Notes under the pieces: model-generated
The model's input: the letters and a program-made list of their open reading frames with translations, nothing else
What the model was told of the DNA's origin: nothing
Database searches by the model: none
Shown: positions 31,001 to 40,000 of the stretch, one piece after another
Numbering within the stretch: the first letter of the stretch is position 1
Layout of the letters: the number at the start of each line of letters is the position of its first letter
Translations under genes and position numbers: made by a program
Origin: Gekko japonicus
Taxonomy: Eukaryota
Direction: 5' to 3'
DNA length: 64,000 nucleotides
NCBI RefSeq assembly: GCF_001447785.1
Contig: NW_015176007.1
Location: 361,088-425,087, forward strand

Positions 31001-34000
31001 AATGTGTGTCTCTTCCATCAAAGGTAGTAATGCTTTGATCTGAAAAAGAGTATTTAGAAAACAGGAGAATAGAAATCCGGAAACCTCTTTATCAACGTGA
31101 CTTTATTTTAATATATTCACACAACTTCTACTCTACATTTTCTCCATTGAGTCCAGTCTTCCTTTTGGGGAACCTTTTGGACCATTTGCGTGGACTCTAT
31201 ACTGTTTGAGATGTTTGCTGTTTATTTAGATTGAAGAGCTTTGCTCTCATACATAATTGGGTCATCCCACGGATGTTTTTTCTTATTCTAGTTTCCTGTG
31301 GGACTTTTTCTCTATATAAGGGAAAGATTGGACTTACTAGAGAGGCTTACAAAACTATTAGCAGCAGCTGTCATTTTGGGGGGGGGGGACGCGGGGGGAC
31401 GCCATCCCCCCGGGTGAGGTGCGGGAGGGCGGGGCCTGGAGCTCCCTGCTGGTGCCCACTGGAGGTCGCCGCCGGCTGTGGGGAGGACACACTTCCGATG
31501 ATGTCAGGGTGTGTGGCATATGCTAATGAGTTATGCTAATGAGTCCCCCTAGCTCTTTTTCTACGAAATGACCCCTGATTAGCAGTATGAGGAACGTGGG
31601 AAATGGTTTTTCTCCAGCTCTCCTAGTGCTAGAACTTGAGATCACATCCAGTGAAACCTGCACTGAACAAGGAAACAGTCTACTTCTGAACCAAAGGATG
31701 TGACTCTCACCACATGCCCTGCTTATCGGCTTCCCAAAGGCATCTGGGGGAGAGATACTGGACTGGATGAAACTTTGGATCTGATCAGCACAGTCACTCT
31801 ACATGCAACCTTGATGCAGATACTAGAGAAGCAACAGAAAATAGTATTCCCACTGCCTTCCCTGCTTCTTGCTTCCCAGTATTACAACCCAAGTCACCTC
31901 CTTCACCTTGGACGATGCTTGGCAATTTGAAAAGCAGCAGGCAAGCCTGGACTTGCACCTGGCCACTTCAGGCATGACCGCAGAAGAAAAATAGACAGTG
32001 CACCTTTTGTGCTCATGAAGGGACCTGAGTGGAGGGAGGGAGGGAGAGGACAGCGCTCCCTGGGAAATGACGCATCAGCTGACCTGCTCTCATAGTAGCC
32101 CAGGAAGAAAACATTGCAGGCAAAACACAAGCCCAGCCAGAGCACCACTAACCGGACAGCCAGTCCCACCATCTGCACTCAGAGAAGCCGTCGGTGTGAA
32201 TTTCCAAGTCTTGGAGTTGTACCCCTAGATTGTAAAGAGAGCCTCTGTGTAAGAGGACGGTCCAAAGCCTTTGGGAGAGAAGGAACCATTCCTTGCACAT
32301 CGTGACTTCTGGAACGATGCCTCACAGCAATCAAGTCTGGGCTGAGGGCCAGTGTCTTTATTCAGACACCTACCTGGCCAAGCTACTAGAGGGAATGGGG
32401 AACCTGCGCTCACAGAACGCCTTGTGTGACGTCACGCTGGAGGCGGAGGGANNNNNNNNNNNNNNNNNNNNNNNNNNNNNNNNNTTGCAAAATGCACTTT
32501 CTCAGGGATGCCACCAGCCAAGACGCCAACATCAAACTGGCATCAGTCACTGCACGGGGCCTCCATAACATTTTGGATTTCATTTACTCTAACAAGCTTG
32601 AGCTGACCCTCCAGAATGTCGAGGAGACCTTCAAGGCTGCAGAAGCGCTGCTGGTCCGGGAGGTGATCCTGCTGTGCTTTCGGTTTTTGGAGGAAGGCTT
32701 GAATCAACACACCTGCCTGGAGATCCTCAACATTGCAAAAAGGCTTGGCCCAGAAGGCCTGAAGCAGAAAGCCAGAAGCTGCGTGGGCCAGCACTGCTGT
32801 CAGATCCTGACAGATCCACTGCAGCTGAAAAAGCTCGATGGGGATACTCTACGGGAGATCTTGGAGGGAGCAGACACCGAGGCCCTCAGTGAACTGGAAC
32901 TCTTCCATGCAGCTGTGTGCTGGATACACCATAGCAGTACGCACCTGAGAGATGCAGCCGACATAATAAGGCACATACGCCTTCCCCTTATCCCTCTGCA
33001 CGATCTGCAGAAAGTCATCTGGGAAACGCCCATCATGAAGACTGACCCTACATGCCGCCGGTACCTTCAGGAAGCCCTGGCCTATCACTCCCGGCCATAC
33101 GCACAGCCTGCCCTCCAGACAGAGCATACAAAGGTCCGAGCTAGCACAGATACGCTGCTTGTCCTTGGAGGCAGAACGGCAGACAATGCAGTCTGTGGAG
33201 ACGTATGGGCTGCCAATCAGAGTTGTCATTTGTGGGGAAAGGTAGCGGACCTCCGGAGCCCTGTCTACAACCACTGTGTTGCAGTGATCCAAAACTTTGT
33301 CTTTGTGATGGGGGGACAGAGGACATTTGACCCTACAGGACAACGTCCATCAAATGAGGTAAGTGCAGAGCTTTATTGAAAAGGAATTCTGCACCAGCTA
33401 ATTCCTGCGTAGCATAGCCTGAATGTACAAACAGGCCACAATTTCATCCCACAACCAGCCTCAGCATTCATGCTTCTGAGTTACTTAATGGTGAAAGTTA
33501 GATTCCCCCTAAAGCAGGCAACTTCTCACTGTAGTTTCCTATCTTTATATGGGTGCATATTGTTTAATGATCCTTCAGTCACTGTCCCACGTCTTTTCTT
33601 TCATTCTCAAAGCTTCTCAAAGACAATACTTAAGAAAACTATCTATTCACAGTCACCCACTCACCATCACCAATCCCCTGTTCCACTTAACACTCCCACT
33701 CGTCTAATTTTATGCTCGTTTGGGATCTCTTTGTACTCCCCAGCTGCTTCACAATCTGACAAGCTAAACAGTCATCACACTGTATGCTTCCAAGGCTTGC
33801 AGGAGCGCACAGGTGTTTGCTCAAATGCGCAGCATGATTAAGGGATGGAAAGAGTCCACACAAATGGGAAATGCGTGTGTGACTGTGGGATATGCCCACA
33901 GTAGCAGTCCTTGTGTATCAAGACACAGAGGCAGAACGATCCATCCTACAACAATGGGGCACCAGTGCAGACCCCTTGTAACCCAGAGGCACAAGTGACT

Positions 34001-37000: not shown

Positions 37001-40000
37001 GTGACAGTCTCCATTCTTGTTGCCAGCCATGCTCTTGGTTCCATGCCTACTGGCTCACTGTCATGATTCCTTTATTTGTAAGGGGAAGGGGACCTCTTTT
37101 CAGTGTAATTTCATTCATTTTTAATGGCTCTAGAGGAAGAAGGAGTTATCTCCACTCTAGCACTTGGCCAGACCTTAATATTAAAGAGCCAGCCCCACTC
37201 AGTCAGAACAGAGAGTATGGGGGTTGTCTGGAGGACCTACAGGTCAAAGGAAAACTTGCAGATAAACCAAAACTCACCATGCTCAAACTAGCAGCCATTC
37301 ACACAATAATCTAATCTTCTTAAGACAACTAGCACAGAAGCATTCCAGACCCTAAAATATGACAATCCTCCAGAATTCACAAGTTCTTTAGAAACTCTGC
37401 CACCATTTGACTACAGGTTAGGATATTCTGGTGCTTGTGATCAATGAAACACCTAAATGGTGCACCATCATCCACTCACTAGCATGGGCTAATTAGGAGA
37501 GAAGAACACTCTCCTGTAGAAGCTCCCTGCAAAAAAAAGTTATGCCAAGGCTCAGGCAGTATGCCCAGAGGGGGGAGATACACTGTGAACCCTAAAAGGA
37601 CTTTGGGGTCAAGCTGGGTCACCATTCAGAGCAACTAGAATATTGCCCTTTATGGGCTAGAGATGGCCTGTGCCTCCTCCCACCTTTCTGCATCACAGAG
37701 CCTGACACACAGTGAAATTCAATGGCCTTTTGGTCCTTTACAGGAGGAGGACTGGATTCCCATCAACGAGGCGGAGTCTTACTGCCCAGTCACTGATCAG
37801 TGGACCCTACTCAATCTCTCACCCTTTGATCGTTGCCAGTTTGGCCTGGCGGTGCAGCAGTCTCAACTCTACATCACAGGTGGTGGGTCCCTGCGGCACA
37901 GGAAAAAAGATGATGGTGTCTTTGTCTGCAGCCCTGGCAGAAAAGTGTGGGAGAAGGCCGGTTCCTTGCCCCAGGCACTGGTGGATCACGCCTGTTGCTT
38001 TGTTCAGTTGCCTCATCAGCCCGAGGCCAAGCAGCAGCAGAAGGCAGTGGAGCCTGCAGCCACCAGCAAGAAGAAATCCACCCTCAGCCTTTTCCTCGCC
38101 AACAAGTATGTTCCTTAGGGAGGAAGACTTTTTAGGGAAAATCCAGCAGGAAGTTCTCCTCCTGAAATGAGCAGTAGCAGCAACATTCATTCCAAATATG
38201 GGCCGCCACCTCTATTTTTCTGGATCTGGCACAACCTGGGGAAAATTCAGCATTCACATAGGCTTTGGAAGGGATGTCTGACTGAAACTCACCAATAAGA
38301 GCTGCCAAGCCTCTGAGCCGGTCCTGGCTTGCCAGAATCAGTTCACAGCCAACCTGGTTTGACACATACAGACACTATGTTAGGTTTTATCTTGCCTCTC
38401 CTCTAAGGAATTGAGGACAGCATACACAACCCAGCCCCTACACAGACTCTCTATCCTCACATAGCAGACCACCCAAGCTTTTTCAATAGCAGGACACAAA
38501 ATCTATGCGACTCTGCGTTGTGTATCCATCCCCCCTGTTAGCTGCTCAAGAACTCTGATGTGGCAACATCGTCACTGAATGTCGAAGTCAAGAGGGGCTA
38601 CACTTGGCATACAGGTATTGGATATGACTTAAATGTGAGTTAAGTGGATCTGAGGCTTTAATTATTATTTGCCTTGTGTCAGTAATACTTCATAAAGCTC
38701 CATTTCATGACGTAATTGTAGTGGAATTAAATATGCACTGTTCAGAAACTTCCTTGCTAACCATCTCAGGCAGGCCACACTTGCCCTGTAGGCTACAGAC
38801 TGGATACCCATGTAACAGGTACATACCAAAGGTCACTGGGGAGCTCTGTGCCTGAGTTGGGATATGAACCTGAGTTTCCACAGTCCTAGTCTGACATTCC
38901 AACCACTACACTAAACTATCTTTCAAGCAGCTAAACTGAAACCAACAGACAGCTTCTACTGCCTTAGCTTCAACAAAGTGGTGCGGTGGCACAGGGGATT
39001 TATCCTCTGGTTAAACATCTGAGCTGAACAGGACTGCTGTCAGTTCCAGCCCCACGCTGGTGTGAGCAACCAGCCTTGTCCACAGCTCGCCGTCCACCCA
39101 GCGGTTCGAAAGCTTCAGCGAGTAGATAAAATGGGTACCACTCCTTAGAGAGAGTGGGCACACTAAACCCCTGGTGGCGGTGGTGTTAGCCGACGAGCGG
39201 AAGGTTCGCGCGTAAGATCGAAAGCCGAGAGAGATCTACGCAGCATCAAAAAAGTAGCATGTAATGGGCCATTCTGGCCAGACGGTGGCAGTGCTGCGCT
39301 GCGACTGAGAAAAAACGCTGACGACATCAAGCAACGCCGAGTGAGAATGCTGCCGGAACACGTCTGAAGCTTACAGATGACCAAACTCCTCGTCGGCTAC
39401 AAAAATGTGTGTGAATTAAAAAGATATATGTTGTCCTCCCTTACCCCTATCATTGTTAGTCCCGTGTGAATTCATGAGTAACTGTAAATCGCTCAGAGCC
39501 GGCAGCTCTGCAAGGATTGAGCGATCAATAAATTGAAAGATTATTATTATTATTATTTCCAAAAACGGAAGGAAAACGGGGACTAGCAGAGGCTGCAGGG
39601 TAGAGCCAAGAAGATGGAAGAGTGACTTTAAAAACAAAACAAAATAATTATACCTAGAGCCAACAAAGGGCAGTTTTGATGTAACATTTTAGGGTTTCAC
39701 CCCAGCAGAAAGCTCCAAGTGATGCTGTAATTCCCTATAGTGTACACCCTAGAGGGAAAAGCCAATTCTCACATCACCAGCAAAAAAAATACTTCACTCC
39801 TAACCTTTACCCTCTGCTTCTATATTATCTGGTCCAGAATTGAGGTACTTCACTGCTAGTAAAGTGAATTAGTTGTGTTTGAAAGTGTAGCTGCAAAATG
39901 TGTTCCATCTCTCCTAGGGTTTCCAGGGAAAATGGACCAGCTGTTAAGCCCAGGTTAGCTCACCCGCAGAAATTGTGAATTGCATTCTGAGCAGGAAAGC

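Follow-up and report, generated by a model that had tools for sequence, protein, structure and literature searches.

The stretch of DNA analysed here is 64,000 nucleotides (nt) long and comes from the gecko Gekko japonicus (NCBI RefSeq assembly GCF_001447785.1, contig NW_015176007.1, positions 361,088 to 425,087 of the forward strand); we refer to the whole of it as the window, and all positions are those of the window. Between 32317 and 38118 its + strand carries a gene of the BTB-BACK-Kelch type (hereafter the kelch gene), which consists of four coding exons with GT..AG borders and compatible phases. Exon 1 (32317-33358) is interrupted by an assembly gap of 33 N (32452-32484), which lies within the BTB domain and corresponds to residues 46-61 of the orthologue from Gekko kuhli, P0179. 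The part before the gap (32317-32451, + strand, 45 codons) holds the start codon, the N-terminal segment and the start of the BTB domain, and is 97.8% identical to P0179 residues 1-45. The part after the gap (32485-33358, + strand, 291 codons read from 32486) encodes the remainder of BTB, the BACK domain, a linker and the first Kelch blade, is 93.8% identical to P0179 residues 62-352, and ends in phase 0 at a GTAAGT donor. Intron 1 follows (33359-36225, + strand, 2867 nt). Exon 2 (36226-36478, + strand; acceptor ..TTCTAG, donor GTGAGA, phase 1 at its end) encodes Kelch blades (Kelch_1, E-value (E) 1.4e-10) and is 95% identical to P0179 residues 353-436. Exon 3 (36804-36964, + strand; acceptor ..CACTAG, donor GTAGGT) runs from phase 1 to phase 0, encodes a Kelch blade, and is 100% identical to residues 438-490, while exon 4 (37744-38118, + strand; acceptor ..TTACAG) encodes the last Kelch blades and the C-terminal tail, ends with a TAG stop codon, and is 88.7% identical to residues 491-614.

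There are no in-frame stops in the 570 codons that can be read. The five exon pieces are collinear with the 614-residue P0179 and 89-100% identical to it, and for this reason we consider the four-exon model to be complete. After P0179, the proteins of Paroedura, Euleptes and Eublepharis are the most similar. The exons were searched one by one, and P0179 (94% identical) served as a full-length stand-in for the fold, Pfam and dimer runs. In exon 1, Pfam recognizes BTB in the post-gap part (E 1e-8) and BACK over profile positions 1-101 of 103 (E 9e-14), and Kelch motifs are found in all four exons; P0179 has a complete BTB domain (E 1.4e-22). The protein has the features of the KLHL family, namely an N-terminal BTB/POZ domain, a BACK domain after it, and a C-terminal six-blade Kelch propeller. 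An earlier reading of the window from its letters (the original prediction) had proposed four + strand exons with canonical, phase-compatible junctions encoding these three domains, and the borders, phases and Pfam matches bear this out. It had also likened the protein to the KLHL9/13/26/34/36 group on the basis of two motifs; both are present (one of the FRFDPRxNxW type, 11 residues, and NFVFVMGG), and the tree described below agrees with the likeness. Finally, it had held that the gene is not a recent retrocopy, and this too stands: the kelch gene is a genuine, intron-containing BTB-BACK-Kelch gene.

The predicted fold is that of the family. An AlphaFold2 model of P0179, built on a 32-sequence alignment, has a pLDDT (predicted local distance difference test) of 87.2 and a pTM (predicted template modelling score) of 0.78, and shows a BTB domain, a helical BACK domain and a propeller. 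Its best fold match in the PDB is KLHL22 in the CUL3-RBX1 complex (E 4e-35, template modelling (TM) scores 0.63/0.68), and the Kelch part superposes on the six-blade propellers of KEAP1 and KLHL12 with TM scores of 0.92-0.94. KLHL22 is also the top sequence match among solved structures (E 2e-21), and the BTB-BACK region of KLHL3 aligns over 192 residues, but both of these CUL3 adaptors of solved structure are only ∼25% identical to the kelch protein. A homodimer model of the BTB-BACK region (P0179 residues 1-270) scores 0.72 versus 0.32 for the best control, a value that may reflect the model's memory of the many solved BTB dimers. Among proteins solved as pairs, 21 of 30 reach the mark applied to such models, whereas none of 23 solved as single chains does; the dimer runs have at least 86% contact agreement and a partner pLDDT of at least 80. 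This model supports, but does not show, a BTB-type homodimer.

Orthologues of the kelch gene are widespread. The 291 residues encoded by the post-gap part of exon 1 have close relatives in lizards, turtles, crocodilians, birds, frogs, a salamander and sharks, and the names attached to these relatives disagree (KLHL13, 9, 26, 36). When 1.84 billion cluster representatives were searched exhaustively with HMMER, orthologue clusters matched with 54-64% identity (E 1.6e-71 to 4e-115). They are followed by a protein of the teleost Albula (39%, E 2e-62) and by a marsupial protein that matches only in part (41% over 186 residues), and the remaining matches are all at or below 35% identity, so that there is a sharp break below the orthologues. 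A search with the full-length match P0029 returns more than 120 named full-length orthologues, including those of chicken (XP_004945797), Xenopus, Ambystoma, caecilians, coelacanth and gar, and a search with a marsupial query (8000 best word-sharing candidates scored; 120 of 153 matches listed) adds bowfin, bichir and sawshark. A search of the ESM Atlas gave generic KLHL clusters only. Across 27 non-marsupial jawed vertebrates, 101 alignment columns are invariant.

In total, the orthologue is predicted in more than 150 species, under the automated names KLHL9, 13, 26, 31 or 36. These database names have been taken over from whichever protein was most similar. The original prediction called the gene unnamed, and here it must be corrected, since more than 150 public genomes already include a prediction of it, under inconsistent borrowed names. 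Literature searches found no paper on this kelch gene. The only new point is that it is recognized as an orthologue group in its own right, which is old and has had an unusual history in mammals.

That history is as follows. Neither the HMMER search nor the 120 listed matches of the marsupial query include a placental or monotreme protein. The absence from placentals is well supported but not proven, as it concerns proteins only and no search for pseudogene remnants was made. Three marsupials, Trichosurus, Petaurus and Sarcophilus (P0299, P0325 and P0326), carry a divergent orthologue of 528-562 residues that is 45-51% identical to the gecko protein and forms a long branch (0.89). The claim that the gene is absent from mammals therefore holds for the placental and monotreme proteins searched and fails for marsupials. 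All three marsupial models are without gecko residues 138-163, the first BACK helices, and retain BTB and Kelch; the Sarcophilus model is additionally without residues 183-234. The rest of BACK is 13-24% identical, compared to 53-55% for Kelch, and Pfam finds BACK weakly or not at all in these proteins. The gap in marsupial BACK could be either a real deletion, with loss of the CUL3-docking 3-box, or the result of gene models that skip a shared lesion.

The maximum-likelihood tree (64 rows, quick IQ-TREE search, supports from the Shimodaira-Hasegawa-like approximate likelihood-ratio test, SH-aLRT) places the window protein beside that of Gekko kuhli within Gekkota. The jawed-vertebrate members, marsupials included, form a clade with a support of 99, and the support is 100 when a lamprey protein is added; lamprey probably has an orthologue, its row being of odd composition. 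Such a distribution bears directly on the idea, entertained in the original prediction, of a lineage-specific gene, which would here be a new paralogue of squamates or sauropsids. Nothing speaks for it beyond the absence of a human name, and it is refuted by orthologues from sharks to birds: besides squamates, turtles, crocodilians and birds, the gene is found in amphibians, coelacanth, gar, bowfin, bichir, a teleost, sharks, marsupials and probably lamprey. We give it virtually no weight.

The nearest named clade is true KLHL34. The fork shared by the two has an SH-aLRT support of 92 and includes an amphioxus protein as well; its branching order is drawn as unresolved, and a sister relation is only moderately supported. 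The two genes have the BTB-BACK-Kelch architecture in common, but are only 29-30% identical, and the kelch gene has four coding exons. True KLHL34 was represented by a shrew (Suncus etruscus), an electric ray (Narcine bancroftii), a caecilian (Rhinatrema bivittatum) and a teleost, and the KLHL34 proteins of placental, ray and teleost form a clade of their own with a support of 100; the kelch protein lies in the neighbouring clade, outside KLHL34. KLHL9 and KLHL13 likewise share the architecture, and have the highest raw similarity (∼32%), which explains why their names have been attached to the gene. In the tree, true KLHL9/13-type proteins, represented by Sarcophilus G3WEF0 and hagfish KLHL9/13, are found near KLHL26 and away from the kelch clade, which is separate from the KLHL9/KLHL13 orthologue group with a support of 100.

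These results also decide whether the kelch gene could be orthologous, one to one, to a mammalian KLHL that already has a name, that is KLHL9, KLHL13 or KLHL34. The automated names, the raw similarity to KLHL9/13-type proteins and the unresolved fork with KLHL34 would favour such an assignment. However, the gecko protein is only 29-33% identical to the named paralogues, whereas within its own clade it is 55-57% identical to the proteins of shark, frog and chicken, and two species carry both kinds of gene: Rhinatrema has the kelch gene (P0239) and KLHL34 (P0041), and Sarcophilus has the kelch gene (P0326) and a KLHL9/13-type protein (P0040). From this coexistence, the low identity and the tree, it follows that the kelch gene is not an orthologue of any named mammalian KLHL, in agreement with the original prediction; we regard the contrary as very improbable, if not quite as improbable as a lineage-specific origin. 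In a published classification, KLHL34 belongs to a ‘Clade 1’ together with KLHL9/13/14/15/22/26/31/32/36/42 (PMC10146909), and the kelch gene falls in this clade with KLHL34. A survey of the family lists chicken klhl9.1/9.2, coelacanth klhl13.1/13.2, and zebrafish klhl13-like and klhl43 (PMC10179623, Table S1); we suspect that in chicken and coelacanth the additional entry may be the kelch gene described here.

In Gekko japonicus the kelch gene is nested antisense in an intron of DPP7, as originally proposed. The DPP7 coding exon 3' of the host intron (in the orientation of DPP7) lies at 30413-30531 on the - strand; the piece 30413-30529 matches human dipeptidyl peptidase 2 (PDB 3jyh, residues 290-327, E 2.6e-15). 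The coding exon 5' of the intron lies at 38293-38353, also on the - strand. Its 20 residues are too short and gave no PDB match; judged from the DPP7 sequence and from contiguity with the next exon, its translation is probably the segment of DPP7 just before the 30413-30531 piece.

We therefore consider it probable that the kelch gene of the window is the gecko member of an orthologue group of BTB-BACK-Kelch genes that is ancient in vertebrates, which forms its own clade in the KLHL9/13/26/31/34/36 branch, is neither KLHL9 nor KLHL13, and lies antisense in a DPP7 intron. Four sets of observations count against this interpretation, and concern the assembly gap, the transcripts, the rate of evolution, and the presumed contact with CUL3.

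As the sequence is written, the reading frames on the two sides of the 33-N gap (from 32317 and from 32486) are one base apart. Orthologues have 16 residues between the gap flanks (P0179 residues 46-61), which would need 47 unread letters plus the read base 32485, versus the 33 N that are written. The gap length as written is an estimate, and for this reason the frame mismatch is compatible with continuity, yet it is no evidence for it. About 16 BTB codons are unread, intactness there is unproven, and a hidden lesion is possible, so that the gene's description as ‘intact’ in the original prediction stands for the pieces that were read, which have no stop, and not for the gap.

Transcript evidence comes from three RNA-seq runs with the same species label, and is thin. 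Two of the three predicted junctions are used: 36478/36804 is seen in two X18 reads and one X1 contig, and 36964/37744 in one X1 contig of 634 nt that continues to at least 38200. The third junction, 33358/36226, was not seen in the three runs, so that the junctions predicted for RNA are confirmed only in part. Read depth on the gene is very low (∼1x), and the exons are no deeper than the introns. Compared with the window, reads and contigs have variants at 32934 (S>N), 33322 (R>S), 36370 (T>A) and 36441 (synonymous), the codon positions having been worked out by hand; those at 32934 and 33322 give the Gekko kuhli residues (Asn and Ser, respectively).

Gap and transcripts together raise the possibility that the gene is decaying or silent, an incipient unitary pseudogene with a lesion in the gap and hardly any transcription. 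The one-base frame difference, the low depth and the unseen junction fit this account. It is countered by the 570 stop-free codons, by collinearity with Gekko kuhli at 89-100% identity, by the two GT..AG junctions used in transcripts, and by the fact that gap lengths are estimates, 47 letters being enough to restore both frame and length. We judge decay unlikely, and infer that the unread gap holds no lesion. The third point against an orthologue of an ancient gene is that the gecko and chicken proteins are 57% identical, which is fast evolution for a KLHL.

The fourth concerns function. Proteins of the BTB-BACK-Kelch family bridge cullin-3 and a substrate. By analogy with the family, the kelch protein would dimerise via its BTB domain and would dock on cullin-3 via BTB and the first helices of BACK, and a substrate would be bound on the six-blade Kelch propeller and thereby presented for ubiquitination. 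The 3-box/BACK helices that such docking would involve are present, as seen by Pfam and in the P0179 model. In KLHL3, the phi-x-E motif that contacts CUL3 is M-S-E; the Glu of this motif aligns with a Thr in the gecko protein (D-A-T), and members of the clade differ in both the length and the sequence of the phi-x-E loop. Judged from the alignment, the Thr in place of Glu and the variable loop suggest that docking on CUL3 may be atypical.

The interpretation of the kelch gene as an ancient orthologue carries modest implications. The gene is ordinary in kind, being one more CUL3-adaptor-like KLHL, and the point is one of annotation and evolution. The borrowed names in more than 150 genomes make it look like a duplicate of KLHL9/13, and gene-family counts would be corrected if it were treated as an old orthologue group of its own. 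With no orthologue found in placentals and an altered one in marsupials, the group would provide a further clear-cut case of a gene lost along the mammalian stem.

The spacing at the 3' end of the gene is short: no more than 175 nt separate its stop codon from the DPP7 exon on the opposite strand (38293-38353). There is no AATAAA between the stop and this exon, and the first ATTAAA in the interval 38119-38730 is at 38726. Given the short spacing, the lack of AATAAA, and the X1 contig that extends past 38200, the 3' untranslated region of the kelch gene may overlap the DPP7 exon antisense. This allows a more elaborate scenario, in which an unnamed 43rd type of KLHL, present in the vertebrate ancestor, was lost in placentals and lost its 3-box in marsupials. 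It would still lie antisense within DPP7, its 3' end would reach into the DPP7 exon, and as a result there would be co-regulation of the two genes or interference between them. Taken as a whole this scenario is doubtful, though we would rank it above decay of the gene.

Three further features of the window may be noted. Intron 1 of the kelch gene contains a highly repeated element (∼34240-35234) that resembles a short interspersed nuclear element (SINE), its loose ends being similar to a tRNA-derived SINE head. RNA read depth over this element reaches ∼600, on both strands, and the summed depth of X1 contigs exceeds 300,000. A stretch near 39000-39250 looks similar to it. Farther downstream, an open reading frame (ORF) of 491 amino acids at 50915-52390 (+ strand) has no Pfam match and probably sits in another DPP7 intron; by eye, its Cys/His-rich tail is like the C-terminal part of ORF2 of a long interspersed nuclear element.

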